From Selaginella moellendorffii (lineage: Eukaryota; Plantae; Lycopodiophyta), in the NCBI RefSeq assembly GCF_000143415.4, contig NW_003314355.1, forward strand, positions 1 to 25,270: DNA of 25,270 bases. Direction: 5' to 3'. The stretch's first letter is position 1; every line of letters starts with the position of its first letter. This document shows positions 1-9,879 of the stretch, piece by piece. The notes under the pieces were generated by a model. The model was given only the letters and a program-made list of their open reading frames with translations, ran no database searches and was not told the origin of the DNA. The translations under genes and the position numbers were made by a program.

Positions 1-367
1 TCCAGCACATGTGTTGCACCACAGCAATAGGTGTGCAGCCCTCTACCAAAGGCACACACCACCCCACATCAGGAGGATTAACTGCCAGCCAGCCCACCAC
101 CACCGCACGCAAAGATCCGAGTCTCCCGGCTTTCACCAGGACCCGTCCCAATGCGCATTGTGGTGGCGAGCAGGGAGTGTGATGTTGCAGGTAGCAAAAG
201 CAGAGCCACGAGCCAAAGCCAGAAGCCAAAGCCCACTTTGAGCTCGCCCCGCACGCAGTATACCACGTGAAGAGCACTCGCTCGCCCGGATTCGGACCCG
301 GACTCGGACTCCGAGTTCAACTCGGACTCCACCTCGGCTACCCGACCTCCAACACCCACACTATCCC
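1..367 (-). other. Probable start of the 5' external transcribed spacer of the next rDNA unit; includes a CCGAGT-type hexamer run (~292..350)
   Basis: GC-rich sequence immediately downstream of the predicted start site; GGACTC/CCGAGT hexamer periodicity; no credible ORF. Confidence 0.5.
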
Positions 368-482
368 TACTATACTTTTGGAACCCCCCACAGCCCCCCC
401 CTCCTGGGAGACACACGCTTTGGGCTTTCACCCCACAGCATGTATTAGTGTTCGGGCTTAGAATCTGGAAGTGCTGCGACTT
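343..482 (-). promoter_or_regulatory. RNA polymerase I promoter / transcription initiation site of the next rDNA unit (TATAGTAGGG at 374..365, predicted +1 A at 368)
   Basis: The minus strand reads CAAAAGTATAGTAGGGATAGTG, matching the plant Pol I initiation consensus TATA(G)TAGGG. It has the same orientation as the 45S cistron and lies at the distal end of the IGS. An upstream block GGGGTGAAAGCCCAAAGCG (434..416) recurs in the 3'ETS subrepeats. Confidence 0.75.
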
Positions 483-677
483 CTGCAACATCAACAATGA
501 AAAAGTGGTCATTTTTTCTTACTTTTTTTTTTCGAGTGTCACAAGACGACTCCTAGGAGCGGATGACACGTGGCACACTGTTCATGCCATGTAACATGTG
601 CCGTTTTTAGTGGTTTTTCAAGGTAAGAGTCACGTGACATATTTCGAGCTTGGTGTCATGGTAGTAAATGTAGTGTT

Positions 678-1117
678 GCCAACTCATATTTCGGCTAAAG
701 TTGGATGTTTTTGAGTTGTTTTTTTTCGTAGTAACTTATATCGCCACGTGTTATTCCACGTGCTCTAAAGATGGCACACGGGCTCAATGTATGGAACGCA
801 ACACTATGCCATGTGCAAGTGTAGGGTTTAGGGTTTAGGGTAGGGTAGGGTTTGCCACGTGGCATACATTTTGAGCAATTTATATGCCATGAGCTATACC
901 TTTTAGAAGGTGGCATTCAGACGGATGGTTTGGATGAGGTGGCATGCCACGTGGCATACTTTTATGTACTTATAGCATGCCACGTGGCAAACCCTTGGAG
1001 AGGTGGCATCTTGGAGGTTGCATGCCACGTGGTAAACCCTTGGAGAGTTGGTACCTATGGATGCCACATGGCAAACCCTTGGAGAGGTGGCATCTTGGAG
1101 GTTGCATGCCACGTGAC
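678..1117. repeat. 440-bp inverted duplicate of 10092..10531 (CACGTG-rich IGS repeats)
   Basis: Reverse-complement match with coordinate sum 11209; ORFs 695..916(-) and 10293..10514(+) translate identically. The copy ends exactly at the 5' LTR start (1118). Confidence 0.95.
822..853 (+). repeat. Short interstitial telomere-like tract (TTTAGGG/TAGGG); mirrored at 10356..10387
   Basis: TAGGGTTTAGGGTTTAGGGTAGGGTAGGGTTT contains plant telomere / telo-box units. Confidence 0.7.
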
Positions 1118-2263
1118 TGTCGCGCATGTGACTTCGGGTATCGAAAGTTACCTGTCGGCTAGTCCTTACGGACACTCTTACCTTACTGCCACGATGGCAG
1201 GAGGTCGGTATTGCTGGTTCCCTTTATTAGCCCCTCTTGTTCAAGTGTTAGTTTACTGGGCTTAGCACCTGTACTTAGCCAGATGGACATAAGGTAGGAA
1301 CTCCTATGTGTTTCTAGCTGAGCATACTCGGCCTGGCTTTTTAGTTCTCTTTTGCTCTGTCTTGCACTGGCTTGACAAGAACCCTCGCGTATTGAGATTG
1401 GTCCCTCAATATCGCTACATGATAGCTTACCGTGTCTGCCAAACACCCTCGCTATCATGCCCTTTGTGTTAGTCTCATTTCGGTCCCAAATACTATTTAT
1501 GGAAAGTGTCTAGATTTGCTCATTTGGCATATCTACGGAATGTAGAGATCGTCCTGAACACAATGGTGTTCGTCCCGTGTCCAAATTCGCAATCTAAAGA
1601 CATTCCATATTTAGTAAGTTTCGAGCTTGTCCCAGAGACTAACTCCTGATACTAAGGGAGGCTTGGGGTGAAAGCCCAAAGCATGTGTTCCTCAAGGGGG
1701 GGGGGGCTATGGGGGGTTCCAAATGTATAGTAGGGATAGTGGGTAGGTCGGGCATGGCCGACCAACCTGAGGCATAGTCTAGCTCCCGCTTGCGTGCCTG
1801 TCCTTGTTCTGCGTCCGGCTTGGGTCTAAGCCCAAGTTCCATTCCATGCTAGTTGGTGGAGTACCCATATCCTCGCGTTAGGCCACCGGTATGCCGAAAT
1901 AGCGCCAGACTCCGTTTGGCTCCGTTTTGCGTGCTGGTTCTGGCATTGGTATGCTGGTTGCTCCAGGATTGTTCCAAGTCGCTCCGGGCCCCTGTCCCTT
2001 CGCTCCTTGGGCTTTATGCTCGGGAGTTACTCCGTGGTTCGGTTCCATCACTCCTTGGCTCCATGCTTGGGAGTTTGGCACCGTTCATTCGTTCAGTGGC
2101 CCAAGGCCCTGAACCTCGGGTTCCTATGGACACGTGGCATGGACACGTGGCATGTGACACGTGGCATCTGTCACGTGGCACAAAGAGGGTTTAGGTTCCG
2201 CTTCGTGGTGTTATCCTATGGTAAATCACCATAGGATAAAGGGTCAAAACCACGTGCGCTACA
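1118..2263 (+). repeat. 5' LTR, copy 1 (1146 bp)
   Basis: Direct repeat of 7250..8393; about a dozen differences by eye; followed by the PBS. Confidence 0.95.
1615..1761 (+). promoter_or_regulatory. rDNA Pol I promoter homolog inside the LTR (TATAGTAGGG 1726..1735); equivalent motifs at 7856..7865, 11154..11163 and 17260..17269
   Basis: Collinear with the reverse complement of 343..482: GGGGTGAAAGCCCAAAGC, G-run, GGGGGGTTCCAAA, TATAGTAGGGATAG, AGGTCGGG, at nearly the same spacing from +1. Confidence 0.8.
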
Positions 2264-2265
2264 TT

Positions 2266-2276
2266 TGGTATCAGAG
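2266..2276 (+). other. Primer-binding site, initiator tRNA-Met
   Basis: TGGTATCAGAG begins 2 nt after the LTR's terminal CA. Confidence 0.92.
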
Positions 2277-5200
2277 GATGAGTCTCAGCGAGTACTATTC
2301 AATGAGATTGGGCAACTAGTCTCGTTGCATACGCAGAGATGAAAACGATGATCCGAGTGGGTACACGTTTTGGTGTAAAGGCTTCGCAATCGTTCCTTGG
2401 GATAGGTTTTGGGTTACCTTGTTGTACCTTATGATGTGAGCTTGCGCTTGGGCTTATAGGATGGTTTGGAGATGTTCCGTTTGCATGAGTTTGAGCTTGG
2501 GCTCGTGAGTGAGGCGCATTAGCAACTCAAGGTTGCACTTTGAGTTGGCAGGATTAATGTTAGCCTATCGTTGGTTCCATGAGTTATTCCTTGTACCATG
2601 GGTGAAAGCAAACCTACCTGGGTTTGCTATGAGTGGCAAATAGGCTGGTCCGTAGCTGTTTAGCACGGCACTAGTGGATCCTTCCTAGGCATGATTATAA
2701 GTGGATCAATCAAGACTATAAGGGAATAGTCTATTGGTTCAAGTAATTATCGCCGTGCTCTCTCATAAACTTTTCTTTGATTGAACTGAAGGCAGTGCGA
2801 AAGCAAGCTTGAGGTTTGGTCAAAGATGAGACCGAAAAGAGAGTCATCGAGGACGGAGGATCAAATACGTAAATCATTTTCTCTTCTTGGAGAGATGATT
2901 TGCAACGAGGTGTTAACTCATTGCTTGTGTTCACATAATGCAATCAAGAGTCCCTACCTTGATGCATGTTGGAAATGATGGTCTTACAAATGGTGAGTTA
3001 TGGGATGGATAGTGGTGTAACACTAAACCATTTTGTCTAGGCTCGCTATTGGAAGACTTGGGTTGCAATGCTCAATTCTTTTCTGGGGAACCTTGCTATT
3101 GCTCCTTGAGTAGCTTGGTGTTGGATTAGTGTTGAGTTTGGTCGGAAAGAGAGTGGCATGAGCTTGTTCGTGTTGTGAACAAAAGTTAGTGGTGTTGGGT
3201 GTCGTAAACCTCTATTGGTGGAGTGTGGCATTTATGTTGCATTTTGTCGAATCGAGTTGGCATTTGATACTCACATAAACGTTTGAAGTAATGACATAGG
3301 CATTGCTCATTGTGTTACTCAATTGATGATCAAGTCATTGTGATTATATATCATATCCATGTGATAATGAGCAATGTGTTTACGAAGTTGCTTGGATAAA
3401 TGATGATCAACCCCAAAGTGGTTGGTGGAGAAGCTAGTCTACTTGCACGAAGTAGCATTGTAGTAGCTTTGACTGGATTCTCAATTGTGGTCCATTATGC
3501 TAAGCTTATGTTGGTACCTTGTTTCCTTGAGGGTTTGCCCATAAGGTGTTGGGAATGGGTTGTAGCATTCATTTGCTATAGCTCATCTGTTGATCCGTTA
3601 GCACTTGGAGTAGATTATTGGATGGAGAAGGTGTGAGGTTGATGCATTGATATCGCTAGCACTTGTGTTAGTGGAAGTGGCATTGTTGATTCGAGTGATG
3701 AGGAATTTTCCTTAGAGCTTGATTTTCCATGTCATTTTTCTTGTTAGTGTTTTGGCTTCACATTGGATCTTGAAGGTGGTTGAAGAAGAGTGGTAGTGCA
3801 ATGTGGATATCCGATGATGTGGTCTTTGTGATCAAGCCTTGGATGCTCATTTTGCACTTTGCGGATGTCGGTGTTGGATATCGGTTAAATGGGCAAAGAT
3901 GTTCGATGCTTAAGCATATTGTTGGTCATGAGAACTTGTGTTGAGGTGAACCTATGTGAAGTTGTTAGTAGGAGGAAGTTGGTTGAGTCTTGAAAGTTTG
4001 CATTCCTGGACTGAGAGTCATTCTTTCTCTAGGATGGGAAATTTTCCACAAATTTTCTTAGATTTTTCCAATGGCTAATCTGTTGGTCACTTTGCTCGAA
4101 AACCATTCCATTTTCGAAAGCCAGTACAAACTAGTGAAGGGGTTGGAGTTGACTTCGGTTGGCTTAGATCTTAGTAGGTAGTTTGTATGATGCGACCCGA
4201 AAGGGATGCTAACTTTTGGGGCTAAAGCAATTGAGTTGGATAGAGTCTGGAGTTGATGTAGAAAAGTGGCCGTTGCGCTTTTCTAAGAAAGGTGACTCTT
4301 GTGCCTTTCTTTTGTAGCATTATGCTCGGTGGCAGGTTGCACCTTGCATTTCGCTAAGACTCTATGAGAGTAGTGAGCTCTCACTGATCTTGACTTAGTC
4401 TTGGTAGCCCTGCACCTTGGCTGAAGATGGTGATGTCCAACTTAGTTGTTTGAGGTTGAGATGTTGGTACCCGTACTATAGCTTTGTCTATGAGGAGGTT
4501 GTGTACCGATATGAGTCCATCTCATGGTCTTCACTTTAGTTTCGACTGAGTGTTGATCACATAGCTAGCCTCTTCAAGGCATGCTCAGAGCTATTGACTA
4601 AATGCATTAGTGAGCTTATGGCGGTTGAATTGGATTCGAGTGGTCATTTGATTTGTGCTTGTTTATGAACTTTTATCTCGTACCTGGGGTATTATGTTCA
4701 TGTTGGACAAGTATGTAACTCGATGACATGAGTTAGTGTTTGGGTCTTGTGAAGGCAAGTTGAGGGGTGATTGTTAGTTGCTTTGCGACTAGTGATTACT
4801 TGTAGACTTCATCAAGGACTGTTGACACTTGCTTTGCTCGATGATGATTTAGCAGTGATGGGCTTGCTTTACCAGGTGGTGTTGCGGAGGATCATGTCGT
4901 TAGACTTACATGAGTTTTCATGTTGGCTTGTCGACTCTACCTCTGTCGATATCATTTGGTTACGTCTAGTCCGTAGTGTTGGATTTCATTGAGTCTTGGA
5001 CGTGGTGAATCACTCCTTGATGATATGTATCTGAAACTGAGTATTGCTGAAGGATTGGTCTTGGATACACACTAAGGTATCTTCGACTGTGGTTAGCTTG
5101 GTTGCTAGAAAGTTTTGAGTGGTGATTCACTCTAGCTTTCTTCTAGCTTTGTCCTGATGTTGATGGCATTAAAGTGATGCCTTGTCATTGATGTTGTTGA

Positions 5201-7236
5201 CATTGAGATTCGAGTGAAATGAGATATCCTTCCAAGGATTGATATTGAGTTTCATTAGTCCTGATGATAATAGTGTTGATGATTTGGCTTTAGCTTTGTG
5301 TTGTTAGCATTCATGCATTTGCTAGTTAACAACTATATTGACGTTCAAATGAACTGAGTGGCAAGTTGAGTTAGTTGTGTTCTAGACGAGATTATTTAGT
5401 AGAGGATTGAGCTTTAGCTTTTCCTTGAAAAGTGATTTAGTCGTGGATTATGCTAACTCTACAAGAGGAAGAAGAGTTAGTGATCGATATTAGAATGTTG
5501 AGTCCTTGCTGGATTTGAGTTGGAATATAGCGATCATTAATGATTCTTTTTGAGCTTGTTATGAAGTGAGTTACGTCTTGCTATAGATGGATTCATGGAG
5601 GATCGTTTGATGATCACTTGTTAAACATAGCTTCGTTATGCTTAGCTTTTGGATTGATGCAGAAATGCTCTTCATTAAGCTTTGGCATTATGAAGTTTGG
5701 CTTATGGATGTGTTGAGGAAGATATTGTGGGTTGCACCATGATTTCTTCTTTAGCATTGAAGTTAGCTTCTATGAGACTCGTGATCATTATTAGGCAAGA
5801 CTTAGTTATAGGCTTCTTCGAGCTTTTGGTTCTTGAGTTTTGTGCTCATTGTTCCATTTGTTAGAAGTTGTTGGGGAAGGCATTTTTGGCTCATTAGCTT
5901 CGATATTGAAGTTAGTATTTGCATCTAGCAATCATTGGTGATGATTGACTATCATCTGGGATAATTGATTATCTTTGTCAGAGGTTTTGCTTGATTATCG
6001 TTGATCTAGATTGATTCGCTATTCTTCGGGATGGTGGATTCCTTCTTAGACGATGATTTTGCATCTCTTTATTGATGGGATGATTGATGATCTTTCATGA
6101 TGGTTAGTTGTTCTTTTTGATGGCTTATGGCTTTTCACAATACCACATATTCTTTGTGGTTTGCTCTGGATTGGTCTCTTGGGTTTGAGACATCCGTAGA
6201 TGTTGCTAACACTTGCTTAGGCAACTTGAGTTCCTTCGTGTTGTTGGCTGGGATCTATTCGGATTGGCTAGTGTAATGGTTAATATGAACAAGCGTTTGT
6301 TTGCTTTGCAACATTCATTTTGTTCTGTTGATTATTGCTCGAAGTTAGTTCTCATAGATTAGGATGTTATTTCCTTCGGGTGATACATTCGCGAGCATTG
6401 TGCTTGTTAGTCAACGATACTTTGTGTTCTTTGAGTTGTGTTTTGTGAGTTGTTTGGCATGCTATCAGCCATTTTCGGTAGTTAAGTTTTCTCATTGAGT
6501 TTACTTGATGATATACTTGCTATTGAATTTTGTTAGATGGTGAATTCTATGTTTTCCACTGATAGTGATCTTGGTGGTTCTTATACTATAATACTCGTTT
6601 ATCGGATGATAACTTACTTGGAATACTTTTGTGTTCTAATCTAAGCTTTATTCACTGATAATTAAATCTCTAAGATATCATTGTTTATGACTTTGATATG
6701 TCCATATATATTGATCTTTGAGTTTGGGCCAGTATAGGCAGACTGGCTTCGGCACTTCGTGTGCATGTTGAAATCTCTAGTCATGGGGTAGCTACTGTCG
6801 ACTGGTCACATAACCCGCCTCTTTGTCGATGTTCCTTGTTCTGTGAAAGGGCGTGACCGTGTAAACAACTCTAAACTGCCTGTTGACAGTAGTCTATCTA
6901 AACCTTACCGACGGGTTTGGTTTCTTTGCTCAGGAGGGTTGGGGCCTCTGGCTTCTCTCTCTATGTCTCTGCGGGCAGGGCATATCACACTTTTGTAGCT
7001 GGGTGACACCCAGAGCAGCAAGGGTGGCTGATTCTGTTGGTCATTTCCTTGTCAGCGACGGCTGGAAGGTGTCTGAGCTGGTAGCGCATCCGCGTTAGAC
7101 AAAGAGGTTGCCCCCTTAACTCATTTAAGTTGGTGCATTTCTCACATAGTGTGAGTACCGTGAACTTTTTTCTGGAGTTGTTTCCTTGGCGGTATTCTAG
7201 ACTCGAGTGTGCATCGACGAGGACGTCGATCTTCCC

Positions 7237-7249
7237 AAGGGGGGGAGAG
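7237..7249 (+). other. Polypurine tract, copy 1
   Basis: AAGGGGGGGAGAG lies immediately before the 3' LTR's TG. Confidence 0.92.
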
Positions 7250-8393
7250 TGTTGCGCATGTGACTTCGGGTATCGAAAGTTACCTGTCGGCTAGTCCTTA
7301 CGGACACTCTTACCTTACTACCACGATGGCAGGAGGTCGGTATTGCTGGTTCCCTTTATTAGCCCCTCTTGTTCAAGTGTTAGTTTACTGGGCTTAGCAC
7401 CTGTACTTAGCCAGATGGACATAAGGTAGGAACTCCTATGTGTTTCTAGCTGAGCATACTCGGCCTGGCTTTTAGTTCTCTTTTGCTCTGTCTTGCACTG
7501 GCTTGACAAGAACCCTCGCATATTGAGATTGGTCCCTCAATATCGCTGGATGATAGCTTACCGTGTCTGCCAAACACCCTCGCTATCATGCCCTTTGTGT
7601 TAGTCTCAATTCGTCCCAGATGCTATTTATGGAAAGTGTCCAGATTTGCTCATTTGGCATATCTACGGAATGTAGAGATCGTCCTGAACACAATGGTGTT
7701 CGTCCCGTGTCCAAATTCGCAATCTAAGGACATTCCATATTTAGTAAGTTTCGAGCTTGTCCCAGAGACTAACTCCTGATACTAAGGGAGGCTTGGGGTG
7801 AAAGCCCAAAGCGTGTGTTCCTCAAGGGGGGGGGGGCTATGGGGGGTTCCAAATGTATAGTAGGGATAGTGGGTAGGTCGGGCATGGCCGACCAACCTGA
7901 GGCATAGTCTAGCTCCCGCTTGCGTGCCTGTCCTTGTTCTGCGTCCGGCTTGGGTCTAAGCCCAAGTTCCATTCCATGCTAGTTGGTGGAGTACCCATAT
8001 CCTCGCGTTAGGCCACCGGTATGCCGAAATAGCGCCAGACTCCGTTTGGCTCCGTTTTGCGTGCTGGTTCTGGCATTGGTATGCTGGTTGCTCCAGGATT
8101 GTTCCAAGTCACTCCGGGCCCCTGTCCCTTCGCTCCTTGGGCTTTATGCTCGGGAGTTACTCCGTGGTTCGGTTCCATCACTCCTTGGCTCCATGCTTGG
8201 GAGTTTGGCACCGTTCATTCGTTCAGTGGCCCAAGGCCCTGAACCTCGGGTTCCTATGGACACGTGGCATGGACACGTGGCATGTGACACGTGGCATCTG
8301 TCACGTGGCACAAAGAGGGTTTAGGTTCCGCTTCGTGGTGTTATCCTATGGTAAATCACCATAGGATAAAGGGTCAAAACCACGTGCGCTACA
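7250..8393 (+). repeat. 3' LTR, copy 1 (1144 bp)
   Basis: TGTTGCGC...GCGCTACA; direct repeat of 1118..2263. Confidence 0.95.
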
Positions 8394-8584
8394 AAAACAC
8401 GCGATTTTTCACGAAAAGTCGGGGAGGTACCCCACATTTTGCAGCGCGCGTTTTGGGCCCCAAAACGCGGTCTTCGTGAATTGTTGGGGAGGTACCACAT
8501 GTCCCGCGGGCGTGCTTTTTGGCGCCCAGAAAGAACACGGGATTGTGGAGGTACGCTGCAGCTTTGGATCAAGCTGCCCCACAC

Positions 8585-8589
8585 TATAA
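8585..8589 (+). promoter_or_regulatory. TATA-like element about 30 nt upstream of the 5S gene
   Basis: TATAA at -31 to -27, the usual position for plant 5S upstream TATA elements. Confidence 0.55.
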
Positions 8590-8615
8590 GAGTAGGGGGA
8601 GTGTGAAATATTTCA

Positions 8616-8734
8616 GAGTGGGTTCAAACCGTGACTATGGCACTGGATCCCATCAGACCTCCAAAGTTAAGCGTCCCTGGGCTTGAATAGTACTGGGCTG
8701 GGTGACCACCCGGGAAGTCCAAGTGACCCCCTCT
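8616..8734 (+). rRNA. 5S rRNA gene (divergent), linked to 45S (L-type arrangement), on the opposite strand
   Basis: Aligns without gaps to the plant 5S consensus (GGATCCCATCAG..CTCC..AGTTAAGCG..TGGGC..TAGTACT..TGGGTGACC..GGGAAGTCC). Helices I, II, IV and V are kept by compensatory changes. A T-run follows. Confidence 0.88.
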
Positions 8735-8746
8735 TTTTGTTTTTTT
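8734..8746 (+). terminator. Pol III terminator T-run
   Basis: TTTTTGTTTTTTT directly follows the 5S 3' end. Confidence 0.8.
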
Positions 8747-9019
8747 CATTACAAGTCATTTATTTTTGTAAGATCACTGTTTTAATATATAAACTTTGAG
8801 TATTTTTCCATAGCATATAAGTGTATGGTCCTTAAATACTACTTACAATTGTCAATGTAAGGTGTGTTTGCCAAATTGTGTCATTAGTTAGTTATTAACT
8901 AGGATATAAGTCACAAAGAATGTGTTGTGACTGTCACCACGTGGCATGGCAAGCAAGTCCAAACATATGTATTTCACATGGCATACAAGGACGCTAAACT
9001 CTAACTATGAGAACAAGCC

Positions 9020-9228
9020 AAAGGGCATGCCACGTGTCAATGTGACACACATTGAAAACCATAAAACTCACCAAAGCACATGCCACGTGTCAATGTGGCA
9101 CACATTGAAAACCATAAAACTCTGAGCACAAACCAAAGTGCATGCCATGTGTCAATGTGGCACACATTGAAAACCATAAAACTCTATGAGATCAAACCAA
9201 AGGCCATGCCACGTGTCAAAATAAAACT
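9020..9228. repeat. IGS subrepeat, ~53-64 bp, about 3.5 copies (ATGCCACGTGTCAATGTGGCACACATTGAAAACCATAAAACTC)
   Basis: Units are anchored at 9031, 9084, 9146 and 9210. The full copies contain the hairpin TCAATGTG-N3-CACATTGA. Confidence 0.9.
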
Positions 9229-9826
9229 CGGATATATCCAGGGCCAGACACATCTGGGGCCCGGCATATCGGGTGCCCGACATGTACGGGGCCCGACATA
9301 TCGGGTGCCCGACATGTCCGGGGCCCGATATATCTGGGGCCGGATATATCGGGGCCCGGACATGTCTGGGTGCCCGATATGTCCGGGGCCAGACATATCG
9401 GGTGCCCGACATGTCCGGGGCCGGATATATCGGGGCCCGGACATGTCTGGGTGCCCGATATGTCCGGGGCCAGACATGTCCGGGGGCCCGACATATCGGG
9501 TGCCCGACATGTTCGGGGCCGTAGATATCGGGGCCCGGACATGTCCGGGGCCCGACGTATTGGGTGCCCGACATGTCCGGGGCCCGATATATCTGGGGCC
9601 CGGACATGTCCGTGGCCCGACATGTCCGGGGCCCGACATCTCTGGGGCCCGACATATCGGGTGCCCGACATATCCGGGGCCCGACATGTCCGGGGCCGGA
9701 TATGTCGGGGCCCGGATATGTCTGGGTGCCCGACATGTCCGGGGCCCGATATATCTGGGGCCGGACATATCGGGTGCCCGACATATCTGGGGCCCGACAT
9801 GTCCGGGGCCCGACATATCCAGGGCC
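9229..9826. repeat. GC-rich quasi-palindromic minisatellite of ~15-17 bp modules (GGGCCCGACATGTCC / GGGTGCCCGACATATC)
   Basis: Continuous array of alternating GGG(T)GCCC and GACATGTC/GATATATC palindromic cores; produces long spurious ORFs on both strands. Confidence 0.93.
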
Positions 9827-9879
9827 TGAGGTATGCCACATGGCATACAAGTGCAGAAGAGGTACCTTCCAATGTCATG

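Follow-up and report, generated by a model that had tools for sequence, protein, structure and literature searches.

Organization of the rDNA unit and its spacer

The analysed window, a stretch of 25,270 nt, is one rDNA unit of Selaginella moellendorffii. Rfam searches placed the 18S (24255-22441), 5.8S (22119-21966) and 26S (21793-18405) rRNA genes on the minus strand and, because of this placement, positions 1-18404 were taken as the intergenic spacer, which runs leftwards to the promoter of the next unit. Within the spacer lies a 5S rRNA gene (8616-8734, Rfam score 90.9 bits) on the plus strand, opposite to that of the 18S-26S genes, with the sequence TATAAGAG located ~30 nt upstream of it.

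Several repeats are found in the spacer. A GC-rich tandem array at 9231-9826 consists of ~37 copies of the 16-nt unit ATATCCGGGGCCCGAC and shows higher-order periods of 32 and 97 nt. Positions 678-1117 and 10092-10531 form a 440-nt inverted repeat (99.8% identity), which encloses the retroelement referred to below as element A, the 5S gene and the 16-nt array, and whose right copy runs on into four 84-nt subrepeats (9901-10232). This inverted repeat may stem from a recent duplication in inverted orientation, from an inversion or from an error of assembly. Short runs resembling plant telomeric sequence (GGGTTTA and variants) are present in both of its arms, at 826-850 and 10357-10388, in the spacer subrepeat region. 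Downstream of the 26S gene, imperfect long repeats extend over 17798-18320 with motif copies 241 nt apart (17811 and 18052), and a 22-nt sequence is repeated 2.3 times at 18263-18313.

Two LARD-like LTR retrotransposons in the spacer

This one spacer contains two non-coding LTR elements, A (7276 nt) and B (7251 nt), both antisense to the rRNA genes and therefore read here on the plus strand. The LTR boundaries were set by a direct-repeat search combined with blastn. In element A, the 5' LTR (LTR1, 1118-2263) is 1146 nt long with TG..CA ends, and the 3' LTR (LTR2, 7250-8393) differs from it by 12 substitutions and two gap columns. In element B, the 5' LTR (LTR3, 10547-11691) and the 3' LTR (LTR4, 16652-17797) are separated by three substitutions and one gap column. 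The lengths of the four LTRs range from 1144 to 1146 nt, and the value of 1145 nt given in the initial annotation should read 1146; all four begin with TGT(C/T)GCGCA and finish with TGCGCTACA. Each LTR also carries, ~25 nt before its end, the equivalent of a near-perfect hairpin, TATCCTATGGT-AAATC-ACCATAGGATA, which is located at 2211-2239 in LTR1.

Reading of the sequence next to the LTRs identified the signals expected for reverse transcription. The primer-binding site (PBS) TGGTATCAGAGG starts 2 nt past the 5' LTR on the plus strand (2266-2277 in element A, 11694-11705 in element B), and we take it to be a match to the 3' end of the initiator tRNA-Met, the usual primer-binding site. The polypurine tract (PPT) AAGGGGGGGAGAG directly adjoins the 3' LTR on the same strand (7237-7249 and 16639-16651, respectively). 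Element B is flanked by a perfect 5-bp target-site duplication, CCGAG, at 10542-10546 and 17798-17802, and its flanks rejoin into a repeat of the region downstream of the 26S gene, which identifies this element as a true integration. No target-site duplication was found around element A, where GTGAC on the left (1113-1117) faces AAAAC on the right (8394-8398). Given this lack of a duplication and the greater divergence of its LTRs (12 versus three substitutions), element A is probably a recombinant of two insertions from which the intervening DNA was lost.

The internal region of element A (2264-7249, plus strand) comprises 4986 nt of non-coding sequence rich in G+T, and that of element B (11692-16651, plus strand), also non-coding, shares 94-95% identity with it. 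Between the two elements, identity is ~95% for LTRs and internal regions alike, compared with 99-99.7% for the LTR pair within each element. No open reading frame longer than 78 amino acids is present on either strand of the internal region, and searches of positions 1100-8420 found neither tRNAs nor Rfam families, the only match (snoZ247) being sub-threshold with an E-value of 0.61. A protein homologue search with the LTR open reading frame at 1853-2191 gave no match, and a contig search for further family members with this frame and that at 1186-1458 (minus strand) returned no record. Both internal regions show a pronounced strand bias (2401-6600 and 12001-16200), with a GC skew of mostly +0.2 to +0.36 and an AT skew of -0.1 to -0.39; the sense RNA would therefore be rich in G and U. 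On their structural features, elements A and B are classified as non-autonomous, LARD-like LTR retrotransposons.

A copy of the rRNA gene promoter in the LTRs

Comparison of the LTRs with the spacer by blastn revealed one significant match, in which LTR positions 515-644 align with spacer positions 468-334 on the minus strand (78-79% identity over 137-138 columns, E-values from 1.5e-23 to 7.7e-25, or ~3e-23 for 78% over 138 columns). This match is shared by all four LTRs and is the sole significant similarity between LTR and spacer. Its spacer side (334-468, minus strand) was assigned as the homologous segment of the rDNA gene promoter from blastn, from the alignments and from the boundary of RNA-seq coverage presented below. 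The corresponding blocks are located on the plus strand at 1632-1761 in LTR1, 7762-7891 in LTR2, 11061-11189 in LTR3 and 17167-17295 in LTR4. The putative gene start is the A preceding GGG in TATAGTA-GGG, at position 368 on the minus strand, and its equivalents in the four LTRs are the plus-strand positions 1732, 7862, 11160 and 17266. In the 3' LTR of element A, this start-like site lies ~750 nt upstream of the 5S gene and on the same strand.

The similarity is concentrated in discrete blocks. The initiator TATAGTAGGG is identical in the gene promoter and in all four LTRs, and it fits the TATA..A-GGG type of initiator present in most plants (PMC4043768). A block at -66 is identical across 25 nt in LTR2, LTR3 and LTR4 and has one mismatch in LTR1; its sequence GGGGTGAAAGCCC begins at -66 in the spacer as well as in LTR3 and LTR4, and one nucleotide further upstream (-67) in LTR1. 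The start-like A is located 615 nt into the 1146-nt LTR, and the orientation of the block is that of the element, from PBS to PPT. These results agree with the initial annotation, which had described a block collinear with the spacer in all four LTRs, a spacing of -66 in the spacer and -67 in the LTR, and a mid-LTR position in the sense direction of the element. The shared blocks that it had listed, CCAGA..CTAA..ACTAA, TGGGGTGAAAGCCCAAAGCGTGTGT, a G-run, GGGGGGTTCCAAA(A/T)GTATAGTAGGGATAG and GGTCGGG, were likewise all found in the alignment. Its span of 1615-1761 was slightly generous at the 5' end, with significant similarity starting at ~1632.

The alignment of 120 columns has 96 matches; its 24 mismatches cluster so as to leave three perfect runs between them, of 25, 25 and 15 nt. 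When mismatches are placed at random, about one arrangement in 10,000 contains three runs of such length (P ~1e-4). The clustering of mismatches, together with the preserved spacing, suggests that gene promoter and LTR share protein-binding sites, and that the LTR block is not a uniformly decaying copy. A signal of selection was also sought within the window by comparing the two elements, which differ at 4 of 130 block positions versus ~3% in the rest of the LTR, one hypervariable patch aside. This comparison gave no such signal, the divergence of the block between A and B being close to that of the remaining LTR. The selection on the block proposed earlier is thus not supported within the window, although the clustered mismatches fit constraint on discrete sites.

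At the sequence level, the LTR module is demonstrably a copy of the host rRNA gene promoter, extending from approximately -100 to a point between +12 and +25, and there is good support for an LTR family having captured a Pol I promoter. A scan of metagenome contigs with the core initiator pattern produced no matches. The 18-mer GGGGTGAAAGCCCAAAGC occurred in metagenome contigs at 14 loci, none of them accompanied by TATAGTAGGG; these occurrences were taken as chance matches and were not used.

Pre-rRNA start and RNA on the elements

Three stranded RNA-seq runs from the same species were mapped on positions 1-3000, using ~9.2 million reads each (~12% of each run, 27.6 million reads in total). 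All 85 mapped reads fell on positions 1 to ~432 in the orientation of a minus-strand RNA. The depth was 4-17 on positions 1-300, 2.6-4.2 on 301-400 and 0-0.3 on 401-500, with zero coverage beyond. [quoted passage not shown] Minus-strand coverage stops between ~370 and 430, one read reaching ~432. A pre-rRNA start at ~368, as predicted earlier, agrees with this boundary, though with so few reads not to the nucleotide; a start elsewhere, which the initial annotation had named as grounds for refutation, is thus not indicated. Since the block in the spacer is where coverage of the pre-rRNA sets in, the segment copied in the LTRs is the real gene promoter. The RNA data also provide read-based support for the position of the pre-rRNA start in S. 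moellendorffii.

On positions 500-3000, which include LTR1 and the first 740 nt of the internal region, none of the 27.6 million reads mapped, a weak negative result since the libraries were probably poly(A)-selected. In the same libraries, the 5'ETS, an unstable and non-polyadenylated Pol I product, was sampled at ~230 reads per kb. From zero reads over 1.9 kb of the element, we estimate that element RNA amounts to less than ~1% of the 5'ETS per base. The transcription of the element by Pol I that had been put forward in the initial annotation thus found no support in these reads, with none on the LTR or internal region against 85 on the 5'ETS, and the element copies are silent in the RNA-seq samples examined.

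One additional run was available as contigs (X1, its type guessed as RNA) and contained LTR contigs with a depth of ~8 versus ~1990 for the ETS. These LTR contigs were rejected as evidence of expression: they equally cover untranscribed spacer subrepeats, they skip positions 1622-2117, and contigs cannot show transcription starts. They could represent DNA carry-over. The deep 5'ETS contig of this run (4-268, depth ~1990) ends at position 268, 100 nt short of the predicted start, which could reflect an early processing site or a mere contig break.

A second spacer-like module in the LTRs

Approximately 400 nt downstream of the start-like site, each LTR contains a tandem array of the 14-nt unit GACACGTGGCATGT, repeated 3.8 times on the plus strand (2129-2180 in LTR1, recurring at 8259-8310, 11557-11608 and 17663-17714). 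The motif CACGTGGCA occurs 42 times in the window versus 0.22 expected, and GACACGTGG 18 times versus 0.11 expected. Beyond the LTRs, motif sites are located at 565-1115, 8938-9217 and 9881-10356, which include the spacer subrepeats upstream of the promoter, as well as at 17811-17819 and 18052-18060. The copies downstream of the 26S gene are in the rRNA sense, and the arrays, present in every LTR, are in the element sense. This array may set the R/U5 boundary as a Pol I stop or factor-binding site; equally, it may be a G-box/ABRE-type Pol II array or just a further exchanged piece of spacer. To our knowledge, no Pol I terminator has been defined in this species, which counts against the Pol I mechanism proposed below. 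The CACGTGGCA copy at 565-575 was considered as a promoter-proximal terminator and set aside as weak, the orientation of GACACGTGG there being opposite to that of the copies downstream of the 26S gene.

Origin of the promoter module

Each of the long repeats downstream of the 26S gene contains one decayed promoter paralogue in the rRNA sense. The first (17959-18052, minus strand) shares 70% identity over 105 columns (E-value 1.7e-8), and it keeps GGGGTGAAAGCCCAAAGCG and lacks the initiator; the second and weaker one was located by alignment within ~18170-18320. The gene promoter and these spacer paralogues (SP1, SP2) have in common the -66 block, the TGTCTCCC(A/T)GG spacer and a segment from +15 to +35, and the latter two are absent from the LTR. 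Conversely, the G-run, TTCCAAA and the initiator are near-perfect in the LTR but absent from the paralogues, so that the core from -35 to +12 is retained in the LTR and missing from the spacer's own paralogues.

The presence of its own decayed paralogues in the spacer identifies the promoter as an old rDNA resident. These older paralogues of the gene promoter, together with the plant-wide type of its initiator, make it most likely that the module came from the rDNA. It is simpler to suppose that the LTR captured the module from a working promoter, and later conversion between neighbouring LTRs and the promoter may have taken place.

Proposed mechanism and alternative explanations

We tentatively propose that the module captured from the rDNA in these LARD-like LTRs drives transcription by Pol I, a reading that we regard as quite possible, though short of probable. 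The orientation of the module and its place 615 nt into the LTR fit a U3/R boundary, which initiation at the conserved A would put at this position. In permissive cells, Pol I would begin at this A and generate an uncapped full-length element RNA, and it would be processive enough for the 7 kb required. The lack of a cap would be no handicap, because the elements are non-coding. The GACACGTGG array ~400 nt downstream would be a candidate end-of-transcript signal or a shared factor-binding site. The element RNA would then be reverse transcribed from the tRNA-primed PBS, and the product integrated by the proteins of an autonomous partner. Transcription by Pol I combined with mobilization in trans is plausible for a non-coding element with a fitting architecture and a processive polymerase. 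In its fullest form, the proposal would define a 'p1' class of LTR retrotransposons with a portable Pol I promoter, in which the GACACGTGG array, as a Pol I stop or factor-binding site, sets R/U5, uncapped 7-kb RNAs are nucleolar and mobilized in trans, and the LTR copy tracks the host promoter as Cassandra tracks 5S; taken as a whole, this extended version appears rather unlikely.

Alternatively, the block might be a passenger gained by recombination or template switching and spread with the LTR family, Pol II transcribing from another site in the LTR and the block having no promoter role. The CACGTGGC repeats are classic G-box/ABRE-type Pol II elements, which fits this explanation, as does the TATA-like CTATTTATGG at 1491-1500, upstream of the block. 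The RNA-seq reads are in line with it in that they revealed no LTR-initiated RNA, but no Pol II transcripts were seen in them either. The block is also conserved between A and B no better than the rest of the LTR, and mostly neutral reshuffling of rDNA modules in transposable elements is the expectation of a 2024 review (PMC10946416). However, a passenger would not be expected to show block-wise conservation with exact spacing, an initiator that the spacer paralogues have lost, and a mid-LTR position in the sense orientation, and we consider this explanation somewhat unlikely. A role in targeting or chromatin, which we find improbable, would have the block, and perhaps the CACGTGGCA array, bind Pol I factors without serving as the promoter of the element; its DNA or cDNA would be drawn to the nucleolus and insert into rDNA spacers as a safe haven, or it would escape or attract rDNA-type silencing. 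Consistent with such a role, this one spacer received the same family twice, each time antisense to the rRNA genes, and element B shows a clean 5-bp duplication inside a spacer repeat. Against it, units that bear insertions assemble more easily than uniform ones, so this enrichment may be an assembly bias, and the choice of integration site is normally set by the integrase of the partner rather than by DNA internal to the LTR.

The flow of sequence might also have been reversed or be continuing, with the LTR having seeded or overwritten the rDNA promoter region, or with local gene conversion keeping both alike. Pol I promoters evolve fast, which would suit this scenario, and the elements share an array with the promoter at distances of 1-17 kb; the perfect 25-nt runs could be conversion tracts. 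The CACGTGGCATG motifs common to the spacer subrepeats and the LTR indicate that sequence moved between them at least once more. On the other hand, the gene promoter has features of SP1 and SP2 that are absent from the LTR (TGTCTCCC(A/T)GG and the +15 to +35 segment) and thus belongs to an old rDNA lineage, conversion presupposes homology and therefore cannot explain the origin, and the initiator is of the plant-wide type (PMC4043768). We accordingly give reversed or continuing flow a low probability. Finally, the repeats could be non-mobile, representing ordinary duplications of spacer promoters or an assembly artefact. Plant spacers often contain duplicated and even inverted start-site motifs (PMC4043768), the 440-nt inverted repeat (99.8%) is odd, and element A has no target duplication. 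This explanation is nevertheless largely refuted, and very improbable in our judgement: the LTRs have TG..CA ends, with a PBS 2 nt past the LTR, a PPT adjoining the 3' LTR and, in element B, a perfect CCGAG duplication; the elements are 95% alike compared with 99-99.7% for their own LTR pairs; and independent public contigs include pieces of the LTR.

Use of Pol II is established for LTR retroelements, and captured Pol III promoters for a few miniature members. A family that had captured a Pol I promoter would complete this set. If the proposed Pol I transcription is true, long non-coding retroelements can evade Pol II-based control via the strongest and most processive promoter of the cell. 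The module would then be a natural portable Pol I promoter from an early vascular plant, relevant to Pol I specificity, to rDNA silencing and to the export of nucleolar RNA into virus-like particles. Should the module be inert, the presence of four inverted promoter copies within this one spacer would still matter for antisense transcription and for how interrupted rDNA units are silenced.

Comparison with known systems

We found no LTR family described as carrying a Pol I promoter in the open-access literature, and the initial annotation likewise knew of none, although such an absence is not proof. A 2024 review of rDNA and transposable elements (PMC10946416) names only 5S (Pol III) promoters for LTR elements and TRIMs, a SINE with 28S fragments, and Pokey with its spacer repeats. 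Pol I is not mentioned by Kojima 2024 (PMC10886601), who sorts such elements into a Pol III and a Pol II class, and the link between spacer repeats, satellites and LTR elements reported for tomato (PMC2679016) does not concern the promoter. As far as we searched, an LTR family with a mid-LTR copy of the host Pol I promoter, conserved in blocks and in the sense orientation, is therefore undescribed.

Among mobile elements associated with rDNA, the piggyBac element Pokey of Daphnia (PMC3849761) is similarly tied to rDNA and carries spacer-derived repeats with a proposed role in transcription. Unlike elements A and B, Pokey is a DNA transposon, and its captured spacer subrepeats are internal rather than a core promoter and start site in a terminal repeat. 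The non-LTR retrotransposons R1 and R2 are also rDNA-resident retroelements and depend on Pol I transcription, but they have no promoter of their own and are located in the 28S gene, where they are co-transcribed with the pre-rRNA; elements A and B would have a portable Pol I promoter and are antisense in the spacer. Plant spacer promoters and inverted start-site motifs (PMC4043768) likewise provide extra copies of the gene promoter within the spacer. In contrast to these, the four copies described here are inside LTRs and inverted relative to the genes, they have kept the initiator, and element B is bounded by a target duplication.

In their overall structure, elements A and B resemble LARDs, with a PBS, a PPT, a 5-bp target duplication and long LTRs around a multi-kb internal region without coding capacity. 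Transcription of LARDs is assumed to start from ordinary Pol II promoters in the LTR, and in this respect the two elements would differ. We know of no LARD with a host rDNA promoter in its LTR, and found none.

A close parallel may be drawn with Cassandra TRIMs, which reportedly go back to work of Kalendar et al. in 2008. Transcription from the captured promoter has been demonstrated for Cassandra, whereas for elements A and B it is a proposal. Together with Ajax and Helenus ('TRIMp3', Kojima 2024, PMC10886601), Cassandra TRIMs are non-autonomous elements that have a PBS and a PPT and carry a copy of a host RNA-gene promoter in the LTR, as do elements A and B. In both groups, conservation peaks at the promoter motifs and mobilization in trans is presumed. 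The captured promoters of Cassandra and TRIMp3 are internal Pol III promoters of 5S or tRNA genes, in contrast to the upstream Pol I promoter of the 18S-5.8S-26S unit in the Selaginella elements, whose LTRs lack 5S and tRNA sequences (Rfam; 5S only at 8616-8734, outside the elements). Cassandra and TRIMp3 elements also do not exceed ~1.3 kb, a limit ascribed to Pol III, compared with 7.3 kb for elements A and B. From these sequence comparisons, the family is most fittingly placed among the non-autonomous LTR elements that have captured a host RNA-gene promoter.
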